DNA from: Octopus sinensis
Taxonomy: Eukaryota
NCBI RefSeq assembly: GCF_006345805.1
Contig: NW_021833068.1
Coordinates: 25,618 to 89,617 of the forward strand
DNA length: 64,000 bases
Direction: 5' to 3'
How positions within the stretch are numbered: position 1 is the stretch's first letter; each line of letters opens with the position of its first letter. Below the pieces are notes generated by a model that saw only the letters and a program-made list of their open reading frames with translations, was not told where the DNA came from and ran no database searches. Both the position numbers and the translations under genes were made by a program. Positions 846 to 48,031 of the stretch are shown piece after piece.

Positions 846-877
846 TTATGCCAGGTAAGGGCAGATCTGGGTCTCCA
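846..877 (-). CDS. Possible terminal coding exon of the ankyrin-RING gene (VETQICPYLA*)
   Basis: tattgtag acceptor at 878-880 after a 75-bp intron. Phase 1 matches the RING exon end, and TAA lies at 846-848. Read-through to the stop at 933 or an exon outside the window are equally possible. Confidence 0.3.
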
Positions 878-952
878 CTACAATATGAAGTGCATTATTC
901 CATACCAGAAAGTTAATGAGACAACAGACAGATCAAGAAAGAATGTTCTTAC

Positions 953-1095
953 CAAATCCACTTATGCTGCGTATGTGTTGTCGACATATGGGGCATTGCT
1001 TAAATGTCATTTGAGAACAGCAATTCTGACAACAAATAGTATGTCGACATGGATGGAGTGTGACAGTAGCCTTTTTCTCTTGACACCACCAACAC
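953..1095 (-). CDS. RING-finger exon (C3HC4, MIB/IAP-like): CWWCQEKKATVTLHPCRHTICCQNCCSQMTFKQCPICRQHIRSISGF
   Basis: ttccacag acceptor and gtaaga donor. 143 nt, starting in phase 2 and matching the preceding exon. C-x2-C..PCxH..C-x2-C..C-x2-C spacing. Confidence 0.9.
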
Positions 1096-1324
1096 CTGTG
1101 GAACAAAATATTAACACATCCCATCATTAACATTCATTTATAATAAAATATTTCGTTGTGGACATGTTTAGAGTACAGAATATTAAGGGTCACAACAGTA
1201 ACCAGCAAGAGTAAATCATAAATTCTTCTGTAAACAATTACATACAAGCAGGTTTGTGTGTGTACAAGTGTCACATTAACATACACATACAAGGGTGGGC
1301 TGAAAATATCAAAGGCTGACTAAG

Positions 1325-1412
1325 GTGCAGCCTTCCAACATGCCATCCCAGTCAAACAGTCCAATCCATGCCAGCATGGACAACAGACGTTAAATGATGA
1401 TGATGATGATGA
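1325..1412 (+). mobile_element. Short 3'-tail copy of the RTE LINE/SINE family ending in (GAT)n
   Basis: ccatgccagcatgg...acgttaaatgatgatgat matches the 3' tail of the RTE at 53793-53950 in the opposite orientation. Confidence 0.65.
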
Positions 1413-1744
1413 CATACGCATTGTTAGTGTGTGTTTTAGGTTATTTTCACATGAAAGCGTACATGACAACTGACTGAGTCAGAGAAGAGAGAGAGAAAAA
1501 AATTGTTGGTAGACAGATAAATCCTATTTACTTCTAAATAGCAATTTCAAAATGTGTTCGTTCACTTTATTATTTAGTACTACATTTTCATGGAGGTCAC
1601 CGAACTCTAAAATAGTCAGGGATGGATGGTGAGGTATATCTGTCAACACAAGCAATCATGTGAATGTCATCAAAATAGTGTTTTTCGTTTGATCCACTAA
1701 CAACTGTATTTTCTGTTTATTGTTCTTATTATTGTTGTGTGGTC

Positions 1745-1960
1745 TTAAGGCTGCAAGCTGGCAGAATCATTAGCACACAGAGCAAAATGCTTTCTGGCAT
1801 TCTGTCTGCCTTTACATGCTGAGTTCAAATTCAGCTGCGGTTGACTTTACCTTGCTGTTGATAAAATAAGTACCAGTTGAAAACTGGGGATGTTGTAATT
1901 GACTTATCCCCTCCCTGACCTTGCTGGCCTTGTGCCAGAATTGGAAATCATTATTGTTGT
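1745..1960 (+). mobile_element. SINE-like dispersed repeat
   Basis: gagttcaaatt B-box-like motif and a gataaaataagtaccagttg core, related to sequence near 42215-42250 and 25190-25210. Recognised by pattern only. Confidence 0.45.
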
Positions 1961-2087
1961 CTTGAGTCAAGACACTAATGACGGAATAATACATTGGGAG
2001 AATTCAAACTAAAGAAACATATAAACATGATTATATACAAAACAGAAAATGTCCTGGTTTATCTTGTCGTTGCCAGTGAATACTTAC

Positions 2088-2263
2088 AGTGATTGTAAAA
2101 ATGTTTTTAATTTTTCTTTCAAATGTTGATTTTCTATGCAGTCCAATGGGGTCACTTTCTCATCATTACGATGGTATAAGCTGGCTCCATGGCTGGCAAG
2201 ATAACTCAAAACTACTATTTCAGAGAGCCTCCTATCCTTGTCCAGTTGGAGCTCTCTGCAGCA
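2088..2263 (-). CDS. Exon linking the ankyrin region to the RING: CCRELQLDKDRRLSEIVVLSYLASHGASLYHRNDEKVTPLDCIENQHLKEKLKTFLQS
   Basis: catttgcag acceptor and gtaagt donor. 176 nt, phase 0 to 2, consistent with both neighbours. Confidence 0.88.
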
Positions 2264-3304
2264 CTGCAAATGATGAAATATAAAACGATGAGTAGAATAT
2301 TACACAAATATATATTGTAGATAAACAAATCATGTCAAATGTAGGAAATGTAATGGAACAAGTATCACAAATAACAGAACACAACAAAGCAACAAGAACC
2401 TATCTTTACAACAGGCTTGATAAAGCCAACTGGCCAGAACAAAAGAAATATTTATAGAAGAGTATTGTATATATAAATATAACACAACAACATAACAACA
2501 ATGGCAAGCTACATTTTGTTACACAAAGGCCATTTTAATTACCATGGGGGTCGTGTGATGGTCTATGGTCACTCAAGATTTTCTGTAATTCCTTGTGGAG
2601 ATTTTAACTGGTCGCAACAAGAAGTATTTTTTTAACTACATATATACTCCTACTTGAATTTGTTTACCATCTGCAAAACTGCCATCAAAACTCAGATTTT
2701 TGACATCTTCAGATCTGCATCTATGAAAGCAGTCACCCATATTTTCCTAATGGTAATTTCGATAATCCAAATATTGATTGGGAAACCTTTCACTGGTCAC
2801 AAAGTGCAACTCATTTCCATAACAACAAACAATGAACAGAGAACACCAAGAATATAATAATTTCTTCAGACACAGCAACAAAACCAACACCAGACAGACA
2901 TATCCAAGCATATCAATAATGTTTCCAAAATTTATAAAGAAACATTTTTGGCTGATGAAGTGAAGTAAAGATTGGTGTGGTGGTTGAGGCAACACACCAA
3001 CACATTATAGTCAAGAAATTATTGAAACTGTTAGTCTGATAGACAATTCCTATAATAATGGGTCGTTGACTGCTAGAGTAGCTTCTTCTCACCAAAGTAG
3101 ACATTACAACAATACACAGGTGACCATCAACTGTCTGAAATACATTCACACATCTGTAGTGACCGTTACATATTTGGGAATCAAAGTGTTGCTTAAATTC
3201 TGCAACAACAGACAAAAAACACCATCAAATCTACCAGTGGATAGATGCTGATGTCTTTCAAACAAACAAACAAACACACACACACACACATATATATATA
3301 TATG

Positions 3305-3450
3305 CACCTAGAAGTAGTTGATAGCTACTGTTATCTAGGTAATCAAGTCAGTAGTGGAGGTGGATGCGCCAAGAGCATAGCTACTAGAATAAGATTAAGC
3401 AGGGCAAAGTTCAGAGAGCTTCTATCTTTGTTGGTAACAAAGGGCCTCTA
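3305..3450 (+). mobile_element. RTE-clade LINE fragment (post-RT region)
   Basis: Translates LEVVDSYCYLGNQVSSGGGCAKSIATRIRLSRAKFRELLSLLVTKGL, homologous to the ORF at 56664-57923. Confidence 0.8.
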
Positions 3451-4333
3451 TGACTATCTGTCTAATTACATCGTCATACATACAATCTCGTGACATCACA
3501 CTTTTGTGCGCACATCTTAATGTAAATTCATTCTCATCACATCTCTCTTCTTTACAATCATTACAAGGGGTATTACTGTAGTCAATGTATACACAAACAC
3601 CAAGCCCTGGCAATATTTGGAACCCTAATTATCAACTTTGAATAAACTCAGTTATATATTCATTATCATACTGATAAAAGAAACTTTCCTCGAAGTCCAT
3701 AAATATATTTTCTTTAAATTTAATTGTCCATAAACGAATTTATTTTCCTTTCCTTTCTTTGAAAAAGAATAATGCAATATGCTTTCTCGCAATTAACACA
3801 GTTCAACTCGTTTAACTTGAAATTCGATATTTAAAATAGTTTGTGAATTTCTCTTTCTTAAATTTAAAGACTTATCTCTGTCGTTGGTCACCTCTCCTTC
3901 ATACAGTGATGGCAGTGTTTACATGACACATATTTAAGACAGGTTACCTTCTTTACAGTGGAGTGGCCATGCTTTTGAAGGTGAAAGAAGATGGAATATT
4001 GTTAGTTACATAATACAACTAGTGCTATCAGGAGAAACTGGATTATTTAATACTAAAGGAAGAGAAGTGGATGGGAGTGAAAGAAAATAGCAAACAATGT
4101 CTGCCTGTTTCTCTATTTCTCTCTCTTTCTCTCACTCACACATACACACATCCTCCTCATCATCATTTTACATTCGTTTTCTATGCTGGCATAGGTCGGA
4201 TGGTTTGGGAGGAGTTGGTCGGCCACAGAGCTGCTCAGGCACCAATTGCCAGTTTTGGCATGGTTTCTACGGTTACATGCCCTTCCTAATGCCAACCACA
4301 CACACACATTCACAAACAATTTTAAAAACTTAC

Positions 4334-4543
4334 CTCATCTAAAATAGGAATGCGTTTCACCTCAGAATGAAATTCCTCTTTCTCTGCTGCAATATGCAAA
4401 CAATTATTGCCATCCTTGTCAACGGCATTCATCTTTGCACCGCACGTGATGATTTCATGGACTATTCCGATGTGGGCTGCATACACGGCTTCCAGTAAGG
4501 GTGTTCTTTTATCATCGTTCTCAATATCCAGTTTCACTGAATC
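4334..4543 (-). CDS. Ankyrin exon D: DSVKLDIENDDKRTPLLEAVYAAHIGIVHEIITCGAKMNAVDKDGNNCLHIAAEKEEFHSEVKRIPILDE
   Basis: ttttacttccacaaag acceptor and gtaagt donor. 210 nt, phase 0 to 0, with two ankyrin motifs. Confidence 0.9.
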
Positions 4544-5299
4544 CTTTGTGGAAGTAAAAATAGAAATTGAAAATGTACATGAAAATTAGGGTGGATGTGA
4601 CATTGCTGTCTTCTACTGGGTACTTGATCAACCTGATCATGTACATTTGATGTTTGTTAGTGTAGTCAACCTTCTGTAAGGTCCCTCTATAACACGCTAT
4701 GGATATTTGTTAGGGACATGATAAATCTATTAAGATGTCATAAACAGATTGTTTCAGCCTCATCTTCATTTATCCCTCACTATATAGTATGTTTTAGGGG
4801 ACTAGAACAAGAGTGAAAATATAATTAGCAGATCAAGTCTAGTAAAGACGAATTATATACTTAATGTAAGCCTTTCATGTTGCTATGTTAATAAGGGATC
4901 CATAAAACGGGGGAGTTGGTTAGTGTCCACATCCTTACATCACTGTACATACAGATGCATAAATATATTAACGTTATGGATGTAACACGCACACACACAC
5001 ATATATATACACACACATATATATACACACACACATATATATATACACACACACATTCATATAACAATCAAAATTGCCACTGAATATATATATATATAAT
5101 ATATATGCATATTTACATAAATATATGTACATACCTACATATATATATATGTATATAGATATATACATGCATATATGGGTACAAGACATAAAAAAATGAG
5201 CACAATGAGAAACGAAAACATAGAAATGAACTTTTCTTCGAACAACTAAAAAAAACAAACAGATCTCTTGGATCCACTTTAGACAGCCTCTCCTTCTCT

Positions 5300-6290
5300 C
5301 ACGCGTTCTCTACATTTAGGAGCCTTTCATAGTGGCACTTCCAAGCCTATTTCTTTGCAGAGTCACTAACTGCAAGGGAGCCATCATCCATGTGAACACA
5401 CTTCTCTCCCACAACATCACAATTTTCCTTGGCAAGCCAAAACACTTCAAATCTCTGCTCCTCACATTGCAAGACACTGGCAAACTTCTTCCTTTCTGCT
5501 TCACTCATGGCTGAGTATACCTGCTTCCTAGCTTCCTTTCTAACTGCCAGATACAACTCCCAGCTGCCACCACCCTTCCCATCCTTGTCCCTGTCAATTA
5601 CCCTTTTCCACCACCACATCACCCTATGCCTGGCTGGGACATTGCACCAGCCACAAATTTGGTCTGAAACTCTCAGCAAGTTGTCCCATTGGAACTTCCA
5701 CTTATCCTCAATGCTGCAAGTCTGAAATTCCTCCTCCTTCCCATTATATGCTTCATTTAGGACATCACTAAACTTCTGACTAATTGAAGGTTCCTTCAGC
5801 TTCCATACTCTTCTTTTCCAAACTGGCTTGCTTCTTGGAATCCTTCAAGCCAGTAGCTTGAACTCCCTAATGAGTAACCTATGCTGTGGGCTACATTCTT
5901 CTCTATTGAAGGCCTTTGCATTTATGAGCAGACATGAATCCTGCTTTTGGGTGAGAATGTAGTCAGTTTGGTGAGCATGTACCTTGGATTTATAGGTTAT
6001 CAAGTGGCTGGCCAGCTTTCTGAAGCAAGTGTTGCGATTATTTGGTCATTTGCACCACAGAACTCCAGTAGCCTTGCACTCCCCTCATTTCAGGAACCAA
6101 ATCTGCGTCCCCCATGGAAGATACCTCGGTGCTGCCCAACATATCCATTGAAATCACTGGCCACGAAGATAAGGTCACAGTCATTTATCTTTGAAGTGGC
6201 CAGCAGAAGAGTGTCATAGAAGTAGCCCTTCAGTTGATTTGGCAGACCCAGTTGTCTGTGTGTGTGTGGGGAGGAGCGCATAGGACGAGA
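5300..6290 (-). mobile_element. Degraded RTE-clade LINE fragment (endonuclease/linker region)
   Basis: ORF 5347-5679 (RKEARKQVY...AERKKFASVLQCEEQRFEVF...DVVGEKCVHMDDGSLA) parallels 57923-58165. ORF 6090-6281 contains an endonuclease-like ASDFNGYVG motif. Confidence 0.75.
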
Positions 6291-6717
6291 TGATTGTTGC
6301 TGTGCCTACATTGACTGCAGCTATCAGCATCTGAAAAGGTTGTTTATGGACACCTGTAAATAGGAGTTAATCAGGTATTGTCACCACCAGCAGTGGAGGG
6401 TGCCGCATCCTGGCATTCATGCAATGCAATGTTAATACAAATACAGGTAAATAAGGTAGGTAGACAAATACAGTAAGGGTAGTTAATCCGTTGAATTAGG
6501 TAGGGAGAGGAGAAGGGAAGTTGATTCATCATGTATTGATGGTAATGGATTAACGAAGCAATAGGGACTGAGTGCAGCGTACCCTCATTTAGCTTTGTTG
6601 CTGGGGACAAGGACTTTTAACTTTTCTCTGTTGCATAATCTCAGCATGCAATGTGTCTGGTACGAATAACTCTGTGTGTACATAAACATATACATACATA
6701 TATATATATAAATATAT

Positions 6718-6781
6718 ATTGACCGTCCAACCCATGCTAGCATGGAAAATGGACGCTAAACGATGATGATGATGATGATGA
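6718..6781 (+). mobile_element. Short RTE 3'-tail copy with (GAT)n
   Basis: gaccgtccaacccatgctagcatggaaaatggacgctaaacgatgatgat matches the RTE tail at 53793-53850. Confidence 0.7.
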
Positions 6782-7399: not shown

Positions 7400-7523
7400 A
7401 CACACATATACATATTATACATGTGTGTATGTATGTATATATATATATATATATATATGTATACACACACATACATACATATATATACACATACATACAT
7501 ACATATATATATATTATATATAT

Positions 7524-7564
<41 letters not shown>

Positions 7565-7911
7565 TATATATATATACACACATACATACATATATATATA
7601 TATACACACATACATACATATATATACACACATACATACATATATATACACACATACATACATATATATATATACACACATACATACATATATATATACA
7701 CACATACATACATATATATACACACATACATACATATATATACACACATACATACATACATATATATATATATATACACACATACATACATACATATATA
7801 TATACACATACATACATATATATATATACACACATACATACATATATACACATACATACATATATACACACATACATACATACATATATACACATACATA
7901 CATATATACAC

Positions 7912-7942
<31 letters not shown>

Positions 7943-7995
7943 CATACATACATACATATACATATATATATATATACATACATACATACATATAC

Positions 7996-8049
<54 letters not shown>

Positions 8050-8064
8050 TACATACACAAATAC

Positions 8065-8110
<46 letters not shown>
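7400..8110. repeat. Compound (TA)/(CATA)/(CA) microsatellite
   Basis: Directly visible low-complexity tract. Confidence 0.95.
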
Positions 8111-10432: not shown

Positions 10433-11460
10433 CTGAAAGGAAGAAAAACAAACATAAAACATCACATTCACTTAATAATTACATTAAATATACACTCGTG
10501 TTCCATTAAATGCATAAAAACCTATGTATACTACAGCCTCGTGTGTGTATATATATAAATATATATGCAAATATGTATGTATGTAGAGGCAAACCTACAC
10601 AAATGTGCCCCAGGCGAATGTTTCCTTGTAACTTCTAGAAAAATGGATGTTTTTCAATGAATTTTCTTTCACAAATATCCTTCAGATGGCAAATATTCCA
10701 ATTATATCGGAATTTGTTGTGAGAAAAAACTTTTCGGTGGGTGGAGAGAGAAATTTAGTAAAGTTCAACCGAGTCGGCTTTCTTTCCAAAAAAATAGATA
10801 TTTTCAAATGAAATTTTCAATAAAACCGTTTCAGATGGTGAAGATTTCGATTATATCGGAATTTAATATGAAGAAAATTATAAAAGTTGGTGGATTCGCA
10901 CAGATATACACTAACACAAAACAGAAAATAAGAAGATGAACTTTGGGAAAATAACCGTGATGTGTGTCAGTATGTATGTGTGCGAAACCATAAAATTTTT
11001 AAAGTTTTTTCATGTTAAATTCCGATATAATCCTAATCTACACCATTTGAAAGGGATTTGTAGAAATTTTCACAGAAACAAAATATCCACTTTTCTGAAA
11101 GTTATAGAAAAACAAAACGGATTTGGGTGAATTTTGAGAAAGTCAACTCCTCAACGTTTGTTGAAAATTTGTTTTTACAACAATTCCGATATAATTGGAA
11201 TCTTCATCATCTGAAGCATTTTTGTCAAAGAAATTTCATTAAAAAATATCCATTTGTCTCAAAGTTATAAGGAAACAAATTCGTCGTGGGGCCCAGTTGT
11301 GTACGTATGCCTATACATATGCACGCATATATATATTTATATGATCTCGAGTATCGAGTACCTACGTCTGGCTAGCGCGCACGCGCGAATCCGCGTGTGC
11401 GCGACCGGGACCACTCTGCGATAATGTCAAAGTCAATAATATTATACAGGTGTATATGTG

Positions 11461-11491: not shown

Positions 11492-12157
11492 GCATGTATG
11501 TGTATGTATGTATATATATATGTATGTATATAGAGAGACAGACAGACAGAGAAATATGAGCCACTGAAATACGTATAATCGTTAATACACAGTAAACAAA
11601 TGTGTACGTGGGTACTTGTCTATTGTCGTGGTCCCGGTTACGCACGCGCGAATTCGCGCCAGACGTAGGTGCCTGTCGTGGGATGAGGTTCGATATCAAC
11701 TTCGCTTGCCTCAACAGGTCTTTGTGTATAAATGTATAAATTTTTCGCACTAAATTCTTTCCGTAGAATTTATCAAAAAACGCGCAAAATTATTCCGTAG
11801 AATTTATCAAATTAAAAAACGCAAAATTAATATATTTTTTGAAATTGCAAATTATTTAGAATATAAAACAAATGAAGTTAAATTTTAAAAATAAATGTCA
11901 TATACTTATACTCTGTAAGGTGCTGTGTTCACACTTCAATTTACTATTTTCTAGAAATGTTGCCTTTCTAATTGAAACAATTTTCTCAATCTCCATTTAA
12001 AAGTCCATAATGCCTCTTGAGCCATATCAAAATGAACAATTTGAATACGCGGCGGCGGTGGTGGTGGTGGTGGTTGTGTGAGGTTCTAATTTTTTCTGAT
12101 CTCTCTTTGCCCCCCTAGATGGAGTTGTGGTGGGGAGACAGATGAAAGATGTTTCAT

Positions 12158-12196
<39 letters not shown>

Positions 12197-12859
12197 CCTA
12201 CACGATATAGTCTATAAATTTGGGAGTTTTTGAAAGATATATATTTTGTCATCAGATATATATACTTTCTCACACTACAATTAAGATATATTTATTTTAA
12301 ATCGTTCATCTTTTCCCGCGACAACAAAAATTGGGCGCGAAAATTTTTCTAAATATTAGCGGAATGAACAACTGAGATAAAGAGGGGGCAAAGAGAGATC
12401 AGAAAAAAAAATTAGAACCTCACACCACCACCACCACCGCCGCCGCCGCGTAATTCAAAGTTGTTCATTTTGATATGGCTCAAGAGGCATTATGGACTTT
12501 TAAATGGAGATTGAGAAAAATTGTTTCAATTAGAAAGGCAACATTTCTAGAAAATAGTAAATTGAAGTGTGAACACAGCACCTTACAGAGTATAAGTATA
12601 TGACATTTATTTTTAAAATTTAACTTCATTTGTTTTATATTCTAAATAATTTGCAATTTCAAAAAATATATTAATTTTGCGTTTTTTAATTTGATAAATT
12701 CTACGGAATAATTTTGCGCGTTTTTTGATAAATTCTACGGAAAGAATTTAGTGCGAAAAATTTATACATTTATACACAAAGACCTGTTGAGGCAAGCGAA
12801 GTTGATATCGAACCTCATCCCACGACAGGCACCCACGCCAACCCCCTTTGCTTGCGAAG

Positions 12860-13585: not shown

Positions 13586-15826
13586 CGCGCTGTAAAAAAA
13601 AAAGTTTCACAAATTATATACATTCGCGTTTGTGTAAAAAATTATTAACCAAGTTTATAAATTATTATTTGTTCAAAAATATTATTAATATTAATTAATT
13701 TTCAAGAATTATTTAATTTATATAATTAATTCATTAATTTTATTCTGTAAAATAGTAATTAATTCATTTATCTGTAAATCCGCGAGGAAAGCGACTATGT
13801 AATTTTTTTGTGTAAAATTGAAAATGTTATATATACACACCACACACACACACATATATATTTTTAGTGAAATCCAACACCTTTTTTTTTAGGGGGGGGG
13901 GGGTAACGCGCATGCGCGAATTCTGCACTGTGCATGCGCAAGTCACCTCGTAGGATCTCGAGTATCGAGCACCTACGTCTGGCGCGCGCGCGCGCGAATT
14001 CGCGTGTGAGAAACCGGGACCACGACAATAGACAAGTACCAATATTTATATATATATGTGTGTGTGTGTATATATGTTAAACTCCAGTGTTTGACTCGAG
14101 CAAAAAAAAATTGTGCAATAGGTGTAAAATAAAATGTAAAACGAATATGTAAAAAAAAAATACACTCTGGCGAACGAGGGGCGGTGGAGACGACTCGAAA
14201 AATTCACACGATCAATCTCACAGGATCCGAAAACTACATGTTGTTTTACACCTATTACACTTTTTGTTTTCATTTTTGGGACCGGTTGTCGAGTGGGGTT
14301 ACCGGATCGTGTGAATCATCCGAGTCCGCACCCCAGATATACACTGACACAAAACAGAAAATAAAAAGATGAACTTTGGGAAAATAACCGTGATGTGTGT
14401 CAGTATGTATGTGTGCGAAACCATCAAATTTTTAAAGTTTTTTCATGTTAAATTCCGATATAATCCTAATCTACACCATTTGAAAGGTGTTTATGGTGGA
14501 AAAAATATTAGGTGGAAAAAATCAACAGCATAATATAGTGAAATAGCAACATAATAACAATAACAACAATAATAATACAGTACAATGCAAAACATTATAG
14601 ATCAGCAAATACATATAAATGAAAAATATTGATTGACATCAGCAAAATCCAGAAGTGTACATGCATATAAGGGCATACAAGTCAGACTTTTGACGGTGAT
14701 ATATATTAAGTGGTAAGTTAGAAATGATTTAAGATTGAAAGCTCAATAGGATTGACTGGAACATTTGAATTTCAATTGTCTCCGTTACGGTTGGTTTATT
14801 AAGATACACTTACATACATACACACGTATATGTGCGCTTATACATATATACAAGATAAACCAAAAAGACAGAAAATACAAGCTTACATACACACATACAT
14901 ACATAACTACGTACGTATAGATCCATATATATATATATATATATATATATAAACAAATACATATACCCGAAAACAACCACGCACACATATATGTATATAT
15001 ACATACACATACATACTGTTAACTAAAATAGTATTAAGAATCATTAAAATTAAGATAATATTAATTGTTAATACAACGAAAGGGGTTGGAAGGGTAATTC
15101 GTAATATACAAAAAAGAGGGCCTAAAAGGGTAGAAAAAGGTAAGGGTTAATAAAAGGCAAAGGTTGGAAATATTGAGATAAAATTTATAAGAAGGGTATA
15201 AACTCAAAACACAGATTTACCATAACCAGTGTAAAGAAGATGTAGGTTATTTGCATAAGATACATAATTAAAAATTACACCACATATTCCGTAAACAATC
15301 AGAAGACTAGGAAACCGTCCAGATATCAACACTTGTAAATTTTATCTGAATATTTTCCAACAGTAATCAGACACAAGAACAGGAGTAAAGAGGGGGGACA
15401 ATCTATTAATGAACCCCTGGATATTACTGGTACAGATTTTGAGCCAGGAGTTGAACTTGGAACACAAACGGATCAAAGTAAGGGGATGATTCTGCATTTA
15501 GCCCAGGGCCAGGAGGAAAGAGGAAAATTTCAAGAGAAGGTGGGGGATGAGGTGTTTTACATGGAATGAAAGGAAGAAGGGAGAGGATTTGAACCTGTAA
15601 CGTTGAGGTAACGAAGGATGAGATGAAGTAAAGAATCCAGTCAGGTAACATCAACAACAATAATTATGAGGATTAATAATGAAGTTAGATTAGTGTCATT
15701 AGAGTGTGAGAGAGAGAGGTGAAGCATGACGACCCATGGTGGGATTATGACATGAATGACTCGAAACAAGAAAAACAAAGATTAAAGAAAACAGATTTGG
15801 ATAATCCAAATCCATTGGGGACTTAC

Positions 15827-16088
15827 TTTTGAACTGCCAGATGGAGAGGGGTGTCACCCTCTTCGTCCACCTTATTGGATTGATGCCATTTTGTTGCTGG
15901 AGAAAATCAACAACAACTTCCTTGTGTCGATGAGCAGAGGCAAGTTGTTGTAGAGGGGTGGAACCTTGCTTGGTCTCAGCTTTAACATCCGTGCCATTCT
16001 GTTGCAGGAGAAGTTCAACAACGTCCTTGCTTCCATAGCGACAGGCAAAATGGAGAGCTGTCCAGCCCAATTCATTTTGCTGATTAAC
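15827..16088 (-). CDS. Ankyrin exon A2 (short type), frameshifted as assembled
   Basis: Splice sites are intact. It is 262 nt versus 257 nt in A4: two 3-nt slippage duplications and a 1-nt deletion. Confidence 0.7.
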
Positions 16089-16825
16089 CTAAATAAGATA
16101 AACAATAAAGACATTAAAGATGGTGTTTATTGGGAGAAGAAGGAAAAAAATGAAAAATGTCAGAAAAACAGAATCAGATTAATTTAAACAGGTGGAATGA
16201 AGGTTGGGGAAAATAAATGAGATTTATAATGTATCTATACACACACACATATGTGTATGCATATATATATATATACACTCTCGCACATACATATATACAT
16301 ACGTGTTTTATATCTTCACGGATCATTTTTTTATGCATTTTTATGTATATATGCGTTTATGTGTGTGTATATTTGTGTATGTATGTACAGGTCTGTGTGA
16401 GCTGAAGAAAGTTTTTAATTAAAAAAATATAAACTGTTTCGAGAAACTGGCGAACAAATAATTTCAGTTTTGTGAGACCAACTCCGAAAGATCACCCGTT
16501 TTTTTCCAATGAAATTTAACAGAAATCCACCCTTTTCAATGTTGTAGCAGCAAGAATTATGTGTGGATTGTGGGAAAGAAAGTGGAAAAGTGTGTGTTGA
16601 GGGTGGAAGGGTATTGATCTGCAACTCATCAAAGATATTTCATTACCATAATCATTATCTATAAACAAGGAAATGAGCAACTTTTATTTAAAAAATTAAA
16701 TCGTCAATAATGAAGAAACAGATTTGGGGCACTAAACTGTATGTATACATCATATACATAAAACACAAACCAACATACATAACTTTATACACACACACAC
16801 ACATATATATAATATATTCGCTGAC

Positions 16826-18074: not shown

Positions 18075-18113
<39 letters not shown>

Positions 18114-18121
18114 TATATATA

Positions 18122-22494: not shown

Positions 22495-22542
<48 letters not shown>

Positions 22543-25557: not shown

Positions 25558-25592
<35 letters not shown>

Positions 25593-26450: not shown

Positions 26451-26492
<42 letters not shown>

Positions 26493-29583: not shown

Positions 29584-29642
<59 letters not shown>

Positions 29643-29644
<2 letters not shown>

Positions 29645-32600
29645 AAGTAGAACTAAAAGAAGGACTGGAAGAGCTAAAGGAAAAGAAAAAGCTCAAGCAG
29701 GACCAAAGAGTGAAACAACCAGAAATAGAAGTGGATCCGCAAAGGATGGAACCAAACAGCGCACACGGGTGTGTATGTTCTACCTGAGAGGTTCCTGCTG
29801 GCATGGAAAGGAAGGTGCAGGCTGCCGCTTTGCACATCGGGGACCTTGCCACAGAGACACGAGGCAGATGGACAAACCATCAACACAAAGAAAAGGGATG
29901 GACCACGCACCACCTGCCCCAAAGCGGAGGTACGCAGATGTTGTGCGCGCCACAAACAGCCAACATGATGTTGTCGAAAGAGCAGCTGCTGAGCAACAAT
30001 CTTTTTTGTGCATGGCACAAAAGATTGTACAGCAGCTGACCTGGCTTCATCAAACCCAAGCCCGCAGGTGGGACTACCCACTATATACCAGACCACCACA
30101 GCAAACAGACACAGGATGGACACCGCCGTCAACAACGTACACCTCACCTCGATACTCCTACTGAACATCAGAGGACTGCAAACACTCAGTAACAGGACAA
30201 AGATCCCGTTCCTGAGAGACTTTGTTGCATGCAATCAAGCCTTATGCATAGCACTTACAGAAACGCACCTGAAACCGGACATAGCAGATGCGGAGTTACA
30301 CATACCACAGTATGCTGTACTACGGACCGACAGGAAAGAAAGGAGTCATGGAGGTGTTGCTATGTACATCCGTGAGGACCTCACACCCCAGGTCCTCTTG
30401 TCATACTCAAACTCGGTGTGTGACACACTAATTGTACATATTAGGCAACTTGATGTAGTTGTGTGTGCTACATATCGCCCTCCAGATGCCCCAAGCCATG
30501 TGGGCAAGTTTGAAGACTGCCTTATAAAAATAGAAGAAATTCTAACCACATTAGAACAACACATAGGTGTGCTTCTTATGGGAGACTTCAATCTGCCCAA
30601 TGTCAGATGGCCCGAGGGCCTTTCTCTCCCAGGAATGACAAGTTGTGAACGAGGACAGGCGAGGTCCCTCCTGAACCTCATCAACACCCTGTACATGGAG
30701 CAGGTAATACTCCAACCAACCAGGGCAGGTAACACACTGGATCTCTGCTTCACAAATGACATGGATCTCATCCATAATGTGAAAGTGACACCGACAATAC
30801 TCTCGGATCACAACATGATAGAGCTGACCATGTACGGGCCAAAAGAGAGCACGGACATGCAGCCTACAAGAAACCCTCAAAATCTTTCCAGCTTGAACTA
30901 CCATAAGGCAAACTGGAAACAAATTGAGAAAGAGATCCTCAAACAAAACTGGCCTGAATGTCTCTCCTCGCCAGACATCGACATGAAACTTCAACAATTC
31001 ATGTCTGTAATGCAAGCCATATGCTACAAATGTGTCCCAGAGAGAAAGGCCACTGTACACAAGAACAAAATCCCCAGAGAGAGGAAAATTTTAATGAGAC
31101 GGCGTACGAAATTTTCAAATCGCCTAAACAAACAGATTGAAAGCAGTGAAAAGTCCCGCCTAAAAATAAAACTGTTGGAAATCGAAAAATGTCTGCAACT
31201 CTCCCATGAAAAAGAAAGAGCAGACAAAGAAGCCTGGGCTATAGAAAACATAAAATCTAACCCCAGAGCTTTCTACATGTATGCCAAAGAAACAGCTACG
31301 GTGCACTGTAGGATAGGGCCACTCCTTGAAAAGGATGGCACACTCACAGGAAAAACAATGAGGGTAAGTGAAATACTGAATGAGCAATTCAAGAGTGTTT
31401 TCACTCCACCCCTTGGGCATTTCCAAATCACCAATCCAACTGACTTTTTTACCACTGCAGATATAAAATCAGAGGCGGCGACGATAGATTACATCGATAT
31501 AAAGGAAGACGATGTAACCAAGGCTATAGATGAAATGAAAACAGACTCAGCTACTGGCCCCGATGGATTCCCGGCAATCCTCCTAAAAGCATGTAAGAGA
31601 GTCCTAGCAAGACCACTGCAGTTCCTCTTTCAGAGCTTCCTTGCAGCTGGCAAACTTCCAGGAAAACTGAAGGAAGGAAGGTAAAATATGCCCCATTCAT
31701 AAAGGAGGTAGCAGAGCGGAAGCCAAGAACTATAGACCTATCTCTCTGACCTCACACATCAGCAAGGTCATGGAACGAATAGTCAGAAGGAAGCTGATCA
31801 CCTTCCTTGAAGAAAATACTTGCTGCCCGACACCCAACATGGTTTCCGACCAGGGAGAAGCTGTTTAACTCAGCTCCTACAACACTATGACTGGGTGCTG
31901 AAACGGCTGCTCAACCACTCAAATGTGGAAGTGATATATCTCGACTTTGCAAAGGCCTTTGATAAAGTCGATCATGGAATGATATGTCACAAACTGCGTG
32001 ATCTCAACATAGTTGGAAAACTGGGAGAATGGCTTCATGACTTTCTGAAGGATAGAAGTCAGGTGGTAGTAGCCAATGGGGCCACCTCCATTAACACACA
32101 AATAGTGAGCGGTGTTCCGCAGGGCACTGTTCTGGGACCACTACTGTTCATAATGGCCCTCTCAGACATGCCCTCAGCCACGCAGAGAGCCACGATCACA
32201 AGTTATGCAGATGATACAAAAGTTTCACAGGCAATACAGAACCCTGAGGACACTAAACACCTGCAATGTGAGCTAGACGAAATATAGAAGTGGGCTGAAA
32301 AGAATAGCATGCAGTTCAATGCTGGAAAGTTTCAAGCTTTATACTATCAGCATGCAAAACTGAATGCAATACCCAATGAATACACTGGACCCGGAGGGAT
32401 TGCAATCCCAGAGGCACAATCAGTGCGTGACCTGGGTATTCACATGAGTGATGACGCGACCTTTCATGTACATGTTGCTAAACTGGCAATGAAATGTAGA
32501 CGGCTGGCTGGATGGATTCTTAGAACCTTTAGAACAAGAGAACAAAAAACCATGATGGTCCTCTGGAAGACACTTGTCCTAAGCCACTTTGACTATCGCT

Positions 32601-33204
32601 CTCAGCTATGGTCACCATCCAGTGTCAAGTTGATCACAGAACTTGAGGCGATCCAACGAAGCTACACAAAGAAGATAGCCTCTATGCAGAATGTAAGCTA
32701 CTGGGAAAGACTCAAGAGATTAAAATTATATTCTCTGGAGCGTAGGCGGGAAAGATATGCCATAATATACATCTGGAAGATCCTGGAGGGAACTGTCCTG
32801 AACTTTGGCATCGAGAGTTACGCAAATGCCAGAACTGGGCGCCACTGCGTGGTGCCAAGGACTCCAAACCTGCCATCAAGATGTAGGACAAGATTCTGTG
32901 ATAGCCTGGGCTTCCGAGGCCCACAGCTCTTCAATATCCTCCCGAAGAACCTGAGAGACCTGCATGGGGTGGATACAGATGTCTTTAAAATGAAGCTGGA
33001 TCTCTTCCTGTCAGGTGTCCCAGATGAACCAACTTCACGGCAGGAGGGGCAGATGAGGGCAGCTGCATCGAACTCTCTCATGCACCAAATAGCAGTTGCT
33101 AGAAAGCCTCCATGAAGTGAAACCAAGTAGCAACACCAAATGGCGGTGCCCCAGCATGGCCACAGCTCATGAGCTGAAACTGGAATCAATCAATCAATCA
33201 ATCA

Positions 33205-33205
<1 letters not shown>
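29643..33205 (+). mobile_element. CR1-clade LINE copy 2 (ORF1 tail with CCCH finger; ORF2 APE-RT, disrupted)
   Basis: ORFs 29769-30164, 30008-31684, 31820-32287 and 32309-33115. QHGFRPGRSC, YLDFAKAFDKVDH, GVPQGTVLGPLLF and YADDTK motifs. (ATCA)n tail. Confidence 0.95.
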
Positions 33206-33243
<38 letters not shown>

Positions 33244-34003
33244 AACAAATACATATACCCGAAAACAACCACGCACACATATATGTATATATATACATAC
33301 ACATACATACTGTTAACTAAAATAGTATTAAGAATCATTAAAATTAAGATAATATTAATTGTTAATACAACGAAAGGGGTTGGAAGGGTAATTCGTAATA
33401 TACAAAAAAGAGGGGCCTAAAAGGGTAGAAAAAGGTAAGGGTTAATAAAAGGCAAAGGTTGGGAAATATTGAGATAAAATTTATAAGAAGGGTATAAACT
33501 CAAAACCCAGATTTACCATAACCAGTGTAAAGAAGATGTAGGTTATTTGCATAAGATACATAATTAAAAATTACACCACATATTCCGTAAACAATCAGAA
33601 GACTAGGAAACCGTCCAGATATCAACACTTGTAAATTTTATCTGAATATTTTCCAACAGTAATCAGACACAAGAACAGGAGTAAAGAGGGGGGACAATCT
33701 ATTAAATGAACCCCTGGATATTACTGGTACAGATTTTGACCCCAGGAGTTGAACTTGGAACACAAACGGATCAAAGTAAGGGGATGATTCTGCATTTAGC
33801 CCAGGGCCAGAGGAAAGAGGAAAATTTCAAGAGAAGGTGGGGGGTGAGGTGTTTTACATGGAATGAAAGGAAGAAGGGAGAGGATTTGAACCTGTAACGT
33901 TGAGGTAACGAAGGATGAGATGAAGTAAAGAATCCAGTCAGGTAACAACAACAACAACAATAATTATGATGATTAATTAATGAAGTTAGATTACAGTGTC
34001 ATT

Positions 34004-34041
<38 letters not shown>

Positions 34042-34145
34042 GAAGCATGACGACCCATGGTGGGATTATGACATGAATGACTCGAAACAAGAAAACAAAG
34101 ATTAAAGAAACAGATTTGGATAATCCAAATCCATTGGGGACTTAC

Positions 34146-34911
34146 TTTTGAACTGCCAGATGGAGAGGGGTGTCACCCTTGAGGTTCACCTTATTGACAT
34201 CCATGCCTTTCTGTTTCAGGAGAAAATCAACAACTTCCGTGCGTCCATGAGAAGAGGCAAGATGTAGAGGGGTGTAACCATGGTTGGTCACAGCATTAAC
34301 ATCCGTGCCATTCTGTTGCAGGAGAAGTTCAACAACATCCTTGCTTCCATAGCGACAGGCAAGATGGAGAGCTGTCCAACCATTTTCCGTCACTGCTTTA
34401 ACATCGATGCCATTCTGTTGCAGGAGAAGTTCAACAACATCCTTGCTTCCATAGCGACAGGCAAGATGGAGAGCTGTCCAACCATGTTCCTCACAGCCTT
34501 AACATCCGTGTCTTTATGTTGCAGGAGAAGTTCAACAACGTCCTTGCTTCTATAGCGACAGGCAAGATGGAGAGCTGTCGAACCATCTTCCATCACAGCC
34601 TTAACATCCGTGTCTTTATGTTGCAGGAGAAGTTCAACAACGTCCTTGCTTCCATAGCGACAGGCAAGATGGAGAGCTGTCGAACCATCTTCCATCACAG
34701 CTTTAACATCCGTGTCTTTATGTTGCAGGAGAAGTTCAACAACGTCCTTGCTTCCATAGCGACAGGCAAGATGGAGAGCTGTCGAACCATCTTCCATCAC
34801 AGCCTTAACATCCGTGTCTTTATGTTGCAGGAGAAGTTCAACAACGTCCTTGCTTCCATATTGACAGGCAACATGGAGAGCTGTTGCACTAAAATTATTT
34901 TTCTGATTAAC
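34146..34911 (-). CDS. Ankyrin exon A5 (766 nt; expected 767 = 257 + 5x102), one-base frameshift as assembled
   Basis: Splice sites are intact. It reads gttcctcac near 34489 where A3 has gttccctcac, a loss of one C from a homopolymer. Confidence 0.8.
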
Positions 34912-41169: not shown

Positions 41170-42090
41170 GACGCACGACACACACACACACACTCTCTCT
41201 CTCTCTCAAACACATGCATATACATTTGCACAAGCACATAGTAATTAATATATAAGCGTACACACACATACAAACGACACACACACACACACACTCTCTC
41301 TCTCTCTCTCTCTCTCTCAAACACATGCATATACATTTGCACAAGCACATAGTAATTAATATATAAGCGTACACACACACACAAACGACACACACACACA
41401 CACACACTCTCTCTCTCTCTCAAACACATGCATATACATTTGCACAAACACATAGTAATTAATATATAAGCGTACACACACATACAAACAACACACACAC
41501 ACACTCTCTCTCTCTCTCTCAAACACATGCATATACATTTGCACAAACACATAGTAATTAATATATAAGCGTACACACACATACAAACGACACACACACA
41601 CCACACACTCTCTCTCTCTCTCTCTCTCAAACACATGCATATACATTTGCACAAACACATAGTAATTAATATATAAGCGTACACACACATACAAACGACA
41701 CACACACACTCTCTCTCTCTCTCAAACACATGCATATACATTTGCACAAACACATAGTAATTAATATATAAGCGTACACACACATACAAACGACACACAC
41801 ACACTCTCTCTCTCAAACACATGCATATACATTTGCACAAGCACATAGTACTTAATATATAAGCGTACACACACATACAAACGACACACACAGACACTCT
41901 CTCTCTCTCTCTCTCTCTCAAACACATGCATATACATTTGCACAAGCACATAGTACTTAATATATAAGCGTACACACACATACAAACGACACACACACAC
42001 ACTCTCTCCCTCTCTCAAACACATGCATATACATTTGCACAAGCACATAGTAATTAATATATAAGCGTACACACACATACAAACGGACAT
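41170..42090. repeat. Minisatellite, nine ~100-bp units each embedding (CA)n(CT)n
   Basis: caaacacatgcatatacatttgcacaa recurs nine times between ~41207 and ~42016. Confidence 0.92.
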
Positions 42091-42756
42091 ATACATACAC
42101 ACACATACGCACACAAGCATACATTACACGTTCATGTTTTGCCCCTTGCCGCAACAAATTTGCACAAAAGGTAAATAAACCAGAAGGTGGGGGGTCAATG
42201 TTTCATCGTTTCGGGGTCGATAAATTAAGTACCAATTACGCACTGGTGTCGAGGATTTTTCCCCAATTTATATCACAGCTTCCGACAAGCTGGGGGCATC
42301 ATTTTATGAAAAAATATTTTGCAAATTTTTACAATACGACTCACACTCCACGCGCAAACTCGAGATCTATTTAGGCATATTATTGTTTTGTTTTTGTTGT
42401 TTTTGGCCATTCAAAACCATGGGAGAAGCCTTTTTGGTAAAAAAAAATAAAGAAAATATTCAAAAAATATCGTTAATATTTTTATTGGGCGACGAAATTA
42501 ATCGATTTAAGAGATATAGCTGTTATTTCTAGCACATGTAGAAGACAGAAGAAGAGGTCAATAATTTGAGCTCGAATGCTGCGATTTCATTGGTTAAAAT
42601 TCTTAAAATTAAACTACGTTTAAGTTACGAATTACAATTTTGTTTTCAATTTTGTTTACAATAATGTTTTCTTTTGACACATTCTACCAGTATACGAAGT
42701 TTCAACTTGTTTAGTTAACTAGGAAAATCTGGCCCTCAAAATGAAAAGATCCTATA

Positions 42757-44193: not shown

Positions 44194-44305
44194 CTGAAGA
44201 GAAGAAAGAGAAGACATGTGAAATATATTAAAGAAGAGAGAGAGAGAGAGAGAGAGAGAGGAGGAGAAGAGAGAGAGAGAGAGGAGAAAAGAGAGAGAGA
44301 AAAGG

Positions 44306-44339
<34 letters not shown>

Positions 44340-44543
44340 GAGAGAGAGTAAAGAAGATGCAAGAGTGAAAAAAAGGAATACGAAAGAGAAATAAAGATAA
44401 ACACACACACACACAAATGCACACACACACACACACACACACACCACACACACACATCATGTTGCAGGGGTTTTCTCAGCCAGATTTTGCCCTTATTTAG
44501 AGTTACACTCCTCCTAGACGAGTCAGGAGACCTTGTAGACACA

Positions 44544-44700
44544 GGCGTGGCTGTGTGGTAAGGAGTTTGCTTTCCAACCACATGGTTCCTGGTTCAATCT
44601 CACTGTGTGTGTGGCACTTGAGTGTCTTCTTTTATAGCCCTGGGATGACCAAAGCTTTGTGAGTGAGCCTGACAGAAAATGAAAGAGACCCATCATACAT
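44544..44700 (+). mobile_element. tRNA-derived SINE
   Basis: ggcgtggctgtgtggtaagg A-box-like and ggttcaatctc B-box-like motifs. Confidence 0.65.
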
Positions 44701-44715
44701 ATGTATGTGTGTGTG

Positions 44716-44765
<50 letters not shown>

Positions 44766-47239
44766 TATATAAGCGTGCACACACACACAAGTATGTGTGT
44801 GTCTAATTATATATTTGTAAATATGTATTTGTGTATATATGTGTGTGTGTGTGATATATATATATATACATGTATCCTCATTCTATATGAATCAAGATTG
44901 GAGCCTGGTGCAGCCATCTGGTTCGCCAATCCTTAATCACATCGTCTATACTGATATGTATGCATGTATGTATGTATAGGTTACATCTCCAATCTGGTAT
45001 GCTCATTTTGTCCAGAATACCGAACTACTGGAAGCTGTCCACAGATGTACAACCACACAAATAGCCTCTCTCAATCACTTATTATTCCTTAAAAGTATTG
45101 CTTTTCCATGCATCAACACACAAAAGTTTTTATTTCTAGCAACTCACTTGATAGAATCCCACAAGATTATCCCTCATCTTCCAATAACAACTTTGACCAC
45201 TTCTGCAATTTAATATCTTTACCACTCTGAGACATGCTTATAAAGTAAAAAAAAAACATCCATCCCAGTTTCCATGATATCAGAAACAATATTTTTATGC
45301 TCAGAATTGTCAAGGCATGGAATAAACTATCTACATTGGTTGTTAGCTGTATCCTTCAAAAACACCACACTTTCTGTAATTCAGAAACACTACATCTGAG
45401 GTTCCTATGCACCCTTTCCTTTTTGTGGTTCTTTTACTGCTCCCTTTTATGTCTTTATGAGTTTTATTCTGTGTTATACTATGACATGCACTTTAGGCGA
45501 CCATTGGGGTCTTTCTTGACATGATTTGTGCTTCCTGTCCTTTCATAGAAGTGGACAGAGCAATATCGAGGGAAACCAGTACAAATACCGTTTCATGGCA
45601 GATGGATGAGTCTTTCTTATGAAACATGAAATGTCTGTCTTTAGTTACAACCTCACTTTTGTCTGAGTGAAGGCCAAAAAAAATCAGTTGAGACAATCTT
45701 CCAGTTTATTACTGGTATCTGTGATATCAATTATGAATTGAAGAGAACACTGACAAGATTTCAAACTTGGTATCTGACAGGAGACACACAGGTAAATAAG
45801 AGAAACCATCTACACTAACCAACAGCAGAGATTAGACCATAAGATAGTGTATAAAGTAATTGGACAGGTGAAGAGCTATAAAGGGTGAAAACCCTCAGAA
45901 ATAATTGTGTAGATTCTAAATATGTCAGACAGGGTTTTAGTTTTATATTCCCTGGAAAAGCTCATGAAATTCTACACTGGGTTATCACTGATGCCTGGCA
46001 TAGTAGCACTTTCATTTAATGCTATAATGATGAAGGAGATTTAAATGATGGTGAAATAGGGCATAGGTAAATGATGGTGAAATAGGGCATAGGTAAATCA
46101 GGGCTAAAAAGGCTTAGAAAGACTGTTCAGTTCATGCATAAGCTCAAGGAAAAGATTGAAAATCCTTTTATCTTAATCACTGAATCTATTACAAAGTAAT
46201 TATTTGTGATTAGACATCTGCGACAACTTTGGAACGACACCAACCACAGCTAAATATGTGCAACTATGGAAAAGGAGGAGACACAAATGAAAAGAAACAA
46301 TGGAGAAAATAAGAAATATTCTGAAAGTAGGGATCAGAATTTTGAGCCTAAATGAGGCAGCAGCAGTGTCAGGGCTTACATTAGTTTGTAGCCATACAAT
46401 ATGTAAGAAGGTGTGAGTGGTTCATACACAACTGTATTACACCTGTACAAAAAAACACTATCGACTTCACCTTGAGGAAAACACCTACCCTCACTAAACT
46501 GGCAGACATTCACCCACCATTGAAATACATGTATGATGGTCATCAAGAAATTAAAGGATGTTTTTTCTGCATTTCACCATTTGTCAGCTGTCTTCCCTCC
46601 CAAATTAAAAGCCACATTTTCTGGTCTCTTACCTAGAGTATCTCTATAGATTTTACAAAATCATTCCACCCACCACTCCCTAACCATGATGGTTCTATAC
46701 CAGTGCTTCTTAAACTTTTCAATTATGGCCCTTTTTTATTTACTAAGAGTTTTTCAATGCCCCTTTTCTTGCTATGATTCAATATCTCTGATTTTTAATG
46801 TTCTCACGGGTCAGATTAATTTACCTTTGGGTCCTAGTCTTGACATGGGTGACTACTTACCACAGCACCACCCCACAATAAGTGAACATTTGATGCATCA
46901 CCACTTCACTTTAGTTTCTGATCCAAACTCAACTACACATTGAGTTTTATATATTTGTACGACCATAGCCACCTTGGCTCCCTGGTCCTTATAAAATTTT
47001 CCACAAACCCTACCCAAGGGTAGCACTACTCTCTTAGGGAAGCCCTGTTTTATAATTCTTGCTGATAGTGTCCTATCTGCTGACTACCAGCCAGTCATTC
47101 TAACTTCCAATATTTCAATTATGAAGTAAAAAGTCATAAACAACCATCATCTTTGTCCCTTTGGGTATCTTTCTCTATTCAATGAGCCCCAGAACAGTTC
47201 CATAAAGCCGGTTCAAGCAGAGGTCTGATTCCTACGTGA

Positions 47240-47480
47240 CTCCCCAGTGTTTTGGTTATGTTTGACAACTTCTGCAAAAGAAATACTGTAGCCCTTGACG
47301 TCGGTAAAACCTTTAACTGTGTATGGCAAGAGAATTTCTTGACAAAGTCATCATTTATCTATTGGGTCCATCTGTCCCCCATCTCTTGAACTGAACATTT
47401 CCTGCCAGAATACTCCATTGCAGTGTGTAAGGATGGGTTTCTCTCTCACTCACATTCCATCAATTCTGGCATACCTCATT
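47240..47480 (+). mobile_element. Degraded LINE RT fragment (CR1/Jockey-like)
   Basis: Weak translations DVGKTFNCVWQ and SINSGIP resemble the RT DxxKAFDxVxH and xNSGVPQG segments. Confidence 0.4.
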
Positions 47481-47649
47481 GTCTGGTTGAATATTTATAA
47501 AAAGTGACAATGATGAGGATTAGAGGAAAGAGGTAAAGAAAGAAATGAAATATTAAGGACAAATATATCTGGTTATTTAGGAACATTTAATATTGTGTAT
47601 AAAATAAACAAACATTTAACATTGAAGAAGCAATATAAAGTAAACTTAC

Positions 47650-47733
47650 TTGATCAGGATTTTTTTTGATAAATCGTTTCACATCTTTAAAGTCCCCATT
47701 CTGAATCTTGCTTATAATTTTATCTACATCCAT
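47650..47733 (-). CDS. First visible coding exon: MDVDKIISKIQNGDFKDVKRFIKKNPDQ
   Basis: cttactttcctttttattcaaaag acceptor, ATG 2 nt into the exon, gtaagt donor, phase 0 into exon C. Resembles the first ankyrin-like helix pair of Mind bomb proteins. The ATG could be internal if upstream coding exons exist. Confidence 0.78.
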
Positions 47734-48031
47734 GTCTTTTGAATAAAAAGGAAAGTAAGATAGTTTTTAAAAACTTATAAAATGAGGTAAAGAGCATTTT
47801 AAAGAAGACTGTGTTTCTCAAATCTCCCATGAAATGACATAAATATTAAAAACTTCAGCTTATCTCAACAATTATTTATAGCTGAATGTTCTCCTTGACA
47901 CTAATAAACCTAACAACAGTCATTGTGTTGCATCTTTTGGTTTGCTACATTGCTCTGCTTATCACAGTCTCATTGGTCACACACACACACACACAAGCAC
48001 ACAAACACACAAGCACACACACACACACACA

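Follow-up and report, generated by a model that had tools for sequence, protein, structure and literature searches.

Organisation of the locus

The DNA analysed here is a stretch of 64,000 nucleotides (nt) from Octopus sinensis (NCBI RefSeq assembly GCF_006345805.1, contig NW_021833068.1, positions 25,618 to 89,617 of the forward strand), which is referred to as the window and numbered from its first nucleotide. It is AT-rich and repeat-rich, contains no N gaps, and by its nucleotide and protein matches groups with O. vulgaris and O. sinensis. It carries on its minus strand a gene for a predicted ankyrin-repeat protein with a RING domain, laid out as a chain of 18 exons in the order start, C, (B-A)x6, E, D, linker and RING. 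Each B exon and the A exon that follows it make up one cassette (Table 1). All exons described in an earlier model-made reading of the same DNA (the original prediction) were found on the minus strand in the order given there, with canonical AG acceptors and GT donors at their borders, and its claim of phase consistency was borne out when the phases were followed exon by exon: exons C and A leave 2 nt of a codon, and B, E and RING open with 1 nt; B and E end at phase 0, at which A and D open. The B-A pair is therefore phase-symmetric, and the frame is kept for any number of pairs. The borders cut the ankyrin repeat at one constant point, after helix 1, so that concatenated cassettes would give a continuous solenoid.

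The B exons are 157 nt each, except for the 155-nt B16. Cassette pairs 1 to 6 provide 4+9+4+8+4+7=36 ankyrin repeats; over the full chain, 38 anchored repeats were counted from C to A09, to which exons E, D and linker add about three, in agreement with the earlier figures of about 36 and about 40. The two domain families named in the original prediction were likewise recovered with Pfam: tandem repeats of 33-34 amino acids (aa) (PF00023/PF12796) scored 769 bits (Ank_2) and 716 bits (Ank) on an intact 1064-aa chain, and the RING matched zf-C3HC4_3 (43.5 bits, cut-off 27).

Several exons were matched individually. The homologue of the start exon is the opening exon of the paralogs P0122 and P0124; exon C has 90% identity to its counterparts in O. 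vulgaris and O. sinensis relatives; exon E matches NQHYHMVASMLAQ of P0007 and the E exons of P0120, P0122 and P0124; and exon D shares 98.6% identity with the one at the O. vulgaris locus L003. A (CT)n/(GT)n run of about 230 nt (44210-44440, minus strand) stands directly before the acceptor of exon C as an exceptionally long polypyrimidine tract. A search of the window against Rfam gave no match.

Table 1. Exons of the minus-strand chain, in order of transcription.
Feature	Position	Strand	Description
Start exon	47733-47650	minus	84 nt; ATG, 28 codons, phase-0 end; peptide MDVDKIISKIQNGDFKDVKRFIKKNPDQ
Exon C	44193-44039	minus	155 nt; encodes the first ankyrin repeats; closes with 2 nt of a codon
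Cassette 1	39835-38977	minus	B39 39835-39679 (157 nt) and short A39 39233-38977 (257 nt); intact
Cassette 2	35525-34146	minus	B35 35525-35369 and long A34 34911-34146 (766 nt, 7.5 units of 102 nt); A34 frame-broken
Cassette 3	28522-27370	minus	B28 28522-28366 and short A27 27626-27370 (257 nt); intact
Cassette 4	23923-22647	minus	B23 23923-23767 and long A23 23311-22647 (665 nt, 6.5 units); intact
Cassette 5	16980-15827	minus	B16 16980-16826 (155 nt) and A16 16088-15827 (262 nt); both frame-broken as assembled
Cassette 6	10432-9259	minus	B10 10432-10276 and long A09 9821-9259 (563 nt, 5.5 units); intact
Exon E	7297-7261	minus	37 nt; (N)QHYDVVASMLAQ; finishes the split repeat left by A and returns to phase 0
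Exon D	4543-4334	minus	210 nt; ankyrin repeat and atypical insert
Linker exon	2263-2088	minus	176 nt; last ankyrin repeat, degenerate, MIB-like
RING exon	1095-953	minus	C3HC4 RING; to stop at 933 if the donor is read through

Reading frame as assembled

The single open reading frame (ORF) of about 1514 aa and 4545 nt that had been claimed is absent from the assembled sequence. The chain measures 4535 nt as assembled and 4533 nt with consensus exon lengths, and its frame is broken in three exons: A34 carries a 1-nt deletion (GGG>GG), B16 two 1-nt deletions in A runs (-2 nt), and A16 two 3-nt duplications together with a 1-nt deletion (+3, +3, -1). Only with consensus exon lengths is the chain open, a conceptual product of 1512 aa being obtained when N is set at each 1-nt deletion. 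An intact ORF of 1064 aa results when A34+B28 and B16+A16 are skipped.

The kind of difference between repeated segments bears on these lesions. Between the segments 14042-23284 and 25561-34782 there are 97 substitutions (~1%) and 76 indel events; 56 of the latter are of 1 nt, and 39 of these 56 lie in homopolymers. Single-base indels reach about 6-8 per kb in the stretch around B16 and A16 (about 14-21.6 kb). The rest of the array has about 3 per kb, and a comparison of the 3' end of the window with L003 gives about 1 per kb. In 3 kb, 10 indels and 28 substitutions separate blocks 1 and 2 of the array (described below); when the 3' end of the window is aligned to the O. vulgaris reference, 6 gaps and 72 substitutions are seen over 6.8 kb. 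Because of the local excess of homopolymer indels, the lesions of B16 and A16 are probably consensus errors rather than signs of decay.

The cassette array and its history

Self-alignment resolved the array into about three copies of a tandem block of ~11.5 kb, composed of B-short, A-short, B-long, A-long and a long interspersed nuclear element (LINE). The segments 14042-23284 and 25561-34782 are 97.5% identical over 9.3 kb, a duplication far beyond chance; the first block is 96-97.6% identical to the other blocks, and the last B-long/A-long pair (cassette 6) is the most diverged copy, with 93-94% identity to the others. The LINE-type retrotransposon at 29630-33205 (plus strand) lies antisense in the intron after A34, within the duplicated unit, and matches the Pfam families Exo_endo_phos_2 (endonuclease) and RVT_1 (reverse transcriptase); a second, more fragmented copy lies at 18096-21700 (plus strand). 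The element stands at the equivalent point after two long A exons, and no copy occupies the homologous position behind the short A exons, from which it follows that the insertion predates the block duplication.

When family proteins were aligned to the window with tblastn, no extra copies of exons C, E, D, linker or RING were found inside the array, which indicates that an exon pair was amplified inside one gene and not a row of whole genes. An array of several truncated gene copies was considered and ruled out, there being no copies of C, E, D, linker, RING or Death exons between the cassettes. Amplification of the B-A cassette within one gene is thus likely real.

The nearest sequences of the two unit types come from different paralog lineages: the long-type units are closest to the B-A pair of gene 1 at O. 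vulgaris L003 (96%), and the short-type units to the O. sinensis loci L001 and L002 and to the A exon of gene 2 at L003. The array looks as if neighbouring paralogs had undergone unequal exchange and the block had then been repeated. With the order of events taken from the identity levels, a short-type and a long-type B-A unit would have been brought side by side, a LINE would then have inserted downstream of the long-type A exon, and the ~11.5-kb block Bs-As-Bl-Al-LINE would finally have been repeated about threefold by unequal crossing-over.

Other repeats accompany the array. A perfect (100%) inverted repeat of 321 nt (11664-11984 and 12517-12837, spacer 532 nt), with further arms at 98% and 93%, lies within a ~2.4-kb insert (about 11.6-14.0 kb) that is unique to block 3; either a recent foldback element or an artefact of assembly may account for it. 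Nested imperfect inverted repeats (10619-11277, arms of 96 and 115 nt, 79-85% complementary) occupy the intron just upstream of B10, and homologous ones lie upstream of the other long-type B exons (24.1-24.8 and 35.7-36.4 kb) and of B39 (40.0-40.7 kb), so that alignments of these regions to their homologues run in either orientation (~73%). They were considered as "selector" elements of splicing; they look like a foldback repeat. Satellites were found in the intron between C and B39 (99-nt unit, nine copies, 41175-42102) and upstream of the gene (370-nt unit, six copies, 54075-56206; ~540-nt unit, four copies, 61795-64000), and a 0.7-kb TA/CA-rich microsatellite in the intron between A09 and E (7406-8109).

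Cassette number in related loci

The O. sinensis scaffold L001 is collinear with the window from 53668 to 3875 (91-96% identity) and carries, between its C and E exons, one B exon and one short A exon. A single B-A pair likewise follows C in the O. sinensis paralog L002 and in O. vulgaris L003, and L003 has in addition a lone extra A exon further downstream, before E. The six pairs of the original prediction were found in the window, and one pair in each of the three related loci, so that a count of six comes from a single assembly. Six pairs fit a very recent lineage- or haplotype-specific expansion as well as inflation in the assembly.

In L001 the orthologous start exon (6410-6500) carries several small indels that scramble the conserved peptide; these may be assembly errors, and they would explain why P0007 is annotated from an internal Met. 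Exon D has only ~80% protein identity to its counterpart in L001, the surrounding 2.8 kb of DNA being 93% identical. Homology to L001 stops at 3875, beyond which linker exons of different paralog types were found. Judged from such matches, the locus is a mosaic of paralog lineages.

Variation among the repeats

The proportion of non-synonymous differences (pN) equalled or exceeded that of synonymous differences (pS) in all comparisons between cassette copies except for the near-identical pair A34/A23. Between the short and long A types pN was 0.15-0.17 and pS 0.05-0.06, the synonymous changes numbering only 3-4. When the distinct 34-aa units were compared, variation was greatest at the residue that follows the leading Gly and at the three final positions, which are the hairpin tips, and the helices were nearly fixed. 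This pattern fits a diversifying binding surface, but relaxed constraint or gene conversion could account for it as well.

The RING exon and the 3' end of the gene

All eight zinc ligands of the RING were read directly (C-x2-C-x11-C-x-H-x3-C-x2-C-x8-C-P-x-C-R), the CP-x-C-R motif being present too, and the best matches among solved structures are cIAP1, MYLIP and cIAP2, with CGRRF1 and XIAP also among them. The original prediction had taken this exon as a tentative last exon and the protein as a solenoid plus a RING. That ending is not supported. The RING exon is closed by a conserved donor, TTTG|gtaaga, after 953, and positions 1-6718 of the window are 98.9% identical to O. vulgaris OX597842.1 (L003) in an alignment that reaches the first base of the window; in L003, spacer exons follow 3.9-6.7 kb and a Death-domain exon 10.4 kb downstream of the RING exon. 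No Death-domain match was found in positions 1-932, and since the window stops ~950 nt past the RING exon, Death exons at the distances of L003 would fall outside it. At least one further exon very probably follows the RING exon, and the "solenoid plus RING" architecture is most likely an artefact of the window edge.

A spacer exon of 51 nt (VCPKSEEKAVQTVAESV) that follows the RING exon is duplicated in L003 (61713-61763 and 62016-62066), and its peptide VCPKSEEKAVQTVAESV occurs three times in protein P0125, so duplication at the level of single exons recurs in the family.

An Octopus ankyrin-RING-Death family

The relatives of the gene are predicted Octopus proteins that were named automatically as "MIB2-like", "ankyrin-3-like" or "PP6 ankyrin subunit B-like", for example the isoforms of O. 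sinensis LOC115225502 and the proteins P0122, P0124, P0125 and P0120. The full-length P0122 (726 aa) and P0124 (607 aa) follow the order start-C-B-A-E-D-linker-RING-spacer-Death with one B and one A exon, the latter holding roughly 4-8 units of 34 aa. The exon set of the family was found in the window in matching order and phases, both by tblastn of family proteins and by comparison with P0122 and P0124. By its exons, therefore, the gene is a member of an Octopus ankyrin-RING-Death multigene family and not a singular truncated Mind bomb (MIB) gene. A literature search turned up no description of such an octopus family.

Alternative junctions are annotated in the relatives, namely A>RING (P0012), B>D (P0005, whose gene spans 116 kb) and A>E>D (P0007); joins A>RING, B>D and A>E are phase-compatible in the window also. 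The homology searches extended to proteins of about 0.57-1.75 times the query length, so that annotated products of the locus of 380-600 aa may be missed, and within this range no annotated Octopus relative exceeded 726 aa.

The Death domain was characterised in the paralog P0001, in which it passes the Pfam threshold and is modelled with a predicted local distance difference test score (pLDDT) of ~90; the model matches the death domains of ankyrin-G, TRADD, FADD, RAIDD and RIPK1. The P0001 model is confident in this domain only, residues 1-226 having a pLDDT below 50, and is uninformative on the MIB-like end and the RING.

At L003, a divergently oriented neighbouring ankyrin gene contains an inverted copy of the start-exon region (L003 624-3322 against window 44972-47809, 95-98%), and in the annotation of this locus two neighbouring genes of the family are joined in a single product of 712 aa, P0120.

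Relation to Mind bomb

The original prediction had described the gene as a reduced, lineage-specific MIB paralog. Affinity to the end of the MIB ankyrin domain was indeed seen: positions 3-134 of the E-D-linker profile align in one stretch to residues 236-380 of the MIB1 ankyrin structure 8v0e_A (92 bits). Among the 60 matches listed, 8v0e was the only one that spanned the whole profile; the others were partial and mostly confined to the generic ankyrin core. A specific kinship of E-D-linker with the C-terminal end of the MIB ankyrin domain is thereby supported. The lack of N-terminal MIB domains also stood, in so far as no MIB_HERC2 or ZZ domain was found by Pfam in minus-strand ORFs of at least 30 aa in the 16 kb upstream of the gene (47734-64000), a scan that left out low-complexity and satellite-derived ORFs and had exons beyond the window outside its reach; only RVT_1 exceeded the threshold. 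The start of the gene agrees with this, with an in-frame stop 13 codons upstream of the ATG and with P0122 and P0124 annotated from the homologous Met.

What did not stand is the description as a singular truncated MIB. One RING exon only is present in the window, and the relatives add a Death domain after the RING; a gene with one RING and a Death domain falls outside MIB proper, and the locus is better described as belonging to a separate ankyrin-RING-Death family.

Sub-threshold PHD/C1 zinc-finger matches upstream lie in retroelement ORFs that bear RVT_1. One such ORF (56191-57923, minus strand) carries RVT_1 (113 bits) followed by a PHD/C1-like zinc finger, and a partial inverted copy of the retroelement (80% identity) lies 2 kb away at 59668-60369 (plus strand).

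Interpretation of the locus

The window probably holds nearly all of one minus-strand gene of the ankyrin-RING-Death family, the single B-A pair of which has been amplified to six. As expected from the family, its protein would open with a 28-aa N-terminus and an ankyrin solenoid, followed by one IAP/MIB-type RING, the parts encoded by short spacer exons and, at the C-terminus, a Death domain. Were every cassette included by splicing and the three lesions due to the assembly, this protein would have ~41 ankyrin repeats and ~1510 aa up to the RING exon, and roughly 120-190 aa of spacer and Death domain would be encoded beyond the window. Such a gene most likely encodes a putative RING E3 ligase: the solenoid would bind substrates or partners, the RING would recruit E2~ubiquitin, and the Death domain would dock the ligase in death-domain assemblies of apoptosis or innate immunity. 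A clustered and structurally unstable family of this kind resembles the lineage-specific expansions of immune and apoptosis genes in other invertebrates. Several observations weigh against this interpretation. The full chain is not open as assembled, with A34, B16 and A16 out of frame; six B-A pairs occur only in the window and not in L001, L002 or L003; substitutions between blocks 2 and 3 amount to only ~1%, a level that heterozygosity could plausibly explain, and some of the array may accordingly be falsely duplicated; no annotated relative within the length range of the matches approaches the predicted size; the Death exons are taken from the related locus L003, none lying in the window; and the biochemical role is read from domain families only.

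It is possible, if considerably less likely, that the gene is real and yields no giant protein, its cassettes being used alternatively or partly skipped, or some of them being decaying pseudo-exons, and its products having the usual size of the family, up to about 1100 aa. Three of the 12 cassette exons are frame-broken as assembled, the 1064-aa ORF is regained by skipping two exon pairs, and the phase symmetry would permit any subset of cassettes. To this may be added the many isoforms with differing exon joins with which the relatives are annotated, the 726 aa of the longest relative among the matches, and the excess of pN, with which relaxed constraint is compatible. Against such a fragmentary output speak the identical strong splice sites of all 12 cassette exons, for which default exon definition predicts inclusion, and the condition of the cassettes themselves, in which neither stop codons nor losses of splice sites were seen and the indel excess in B16 and A16 resembles consensus error, not decay. 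A related idea, by analogy with the variable-exon arrays that work in this manner in some immune and neuronal genes, is that the six cassettes form a bank of alternative modules, the variable or mutually exclusive inclusion of which would set solenoids differing in length and surface on a constant RING-Death chassis and could generate a repertoire of substrate or ligand specificities from one locus. The pN excess between types, the variation at the hairpin tips and the many predicted isoforms of the relatives fit this idea without demonstrating it, and it is regarded as improbable.

The number of cassettes may also have been inflated by the assembler, haplotypes or a collapsed and re-expanded repeat having been set in tandem and the true number being lower, for example two to four. 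That explanation is rather unlikely. It is favoured by the ~1% of substitutions between 14042-23284 and 25561-34782 and the homopolymer share of their indels, by the single B-A pair in the O. sinensis counterpart and in two related loci, and by the perfect 321-nt inverted repeat inside the array (11664-12837), a pattern that sometimes arises from assembly artefacts. It is opposed by the lack of N gaps in the window, by the three long A exons, which differ in sequence and in unit number (5.5, 6.5 and 7.5), by the differences between blocks 1 and 2, which are mainly substitutions (74 against 8 indels in 2.4 kb), by the 93-94% identity of the last Bl-Al pair to the others, and by the unique 2.4-kb insert of block 3. 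The distinct long A exons, the block divergence and the insert indicate that at least four to five cassettes are distinct sequences; unit numbers, the substitution-led divergence of blocks 1 and 2 and the insert together argue that most copies are real. Finally, exons for the MIB/HERC2, ZZ and REP regions of a full Mind bomb gene could lie further upstream, beyond the window, which is very improbable. A possible acceptor (ttcaaaag|AC) directly before the ATG and the limited extent of the upstream sequence, 16 kb, leave room for such exons; the retroelement-only result of the upstream scan, the in-frame stop before the ATG, the homologous starting Met of P0122 and P0124, and the Death domain and single RING of the family, which is unlike MIB1 and MIB2, count against them.

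Significance

If the array is real and expressed, the amplified family gene would show a repeat protein growing in two ways at once, by gain of 102-nt units within an exon and by duplication of a phase-symmetric exon pair, and the growth would be recent because close relatives have one pair. The amplification likely adds a variant to a family that has so far existed only as automatic annotation, that is clustered on at least one octopus chromosome, and the structure of which differs greatly between close relatives. With these traits, with its combination of ankyrin repeats, RING and Death domain, and with no description turned up in the literature searched, the family may represent a branch of ubiquitin and death-domain signalling that is specific to cephalopods. 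Should the array prove to be an artefact or a decaying copy, the locus would be an ordinary member of a lineage-specific gene family.

Comparison with known systems

The closest relatives are the MIB2-like proteins of Octopus, with which the gene has in common the exon set and order, a 34-aa ankyrin unit, the type of RING and a donor behind the RING exon, the C-terminal exons being 78-96% identical; they have one B and one A exon and 600-730 aa, whereas the window locus has six B-A pairs. MIB1 and MIB2 resemble it in the succession of an ankyrin domain and a zf-C3HC4_3 RING and in the collinearity of E-D-linker with the last ~145 residues of the MIB1 ankyrin domain. They differ in the MIB/HERC2-ZZ-MIB/HERC2 and REP regions, which are lacking from the octopus gene in the 16 kb scanned, in a solenoid that is up to ~4 times longer in octopus, and in their two or three C-terminal RINGs, of which the octopus gene has one. 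With RINGs of the IAP/MYLIP class (cIAP1, cIAP2, XIAP, MYLIP/IDOL and CGRRF1) the octopus RING shares the Pro that contacts the E2 and the Arg that follows the last Cys; its loop between ligands 6 and 7 is longer by 2-3 residues, and no BIR or FERM domains accompany it. ANK1, ANK2 and ANK3 likewise combine a long N-terminal ankyrin solenoid with a C-terminal Death domain. The octopus family has a RING in place of their ZU5-UPA region, and the similarity of the solenoids is generic (about 33%); the modelled Death domain of the family is structurally closest to that of ankyrin-G.

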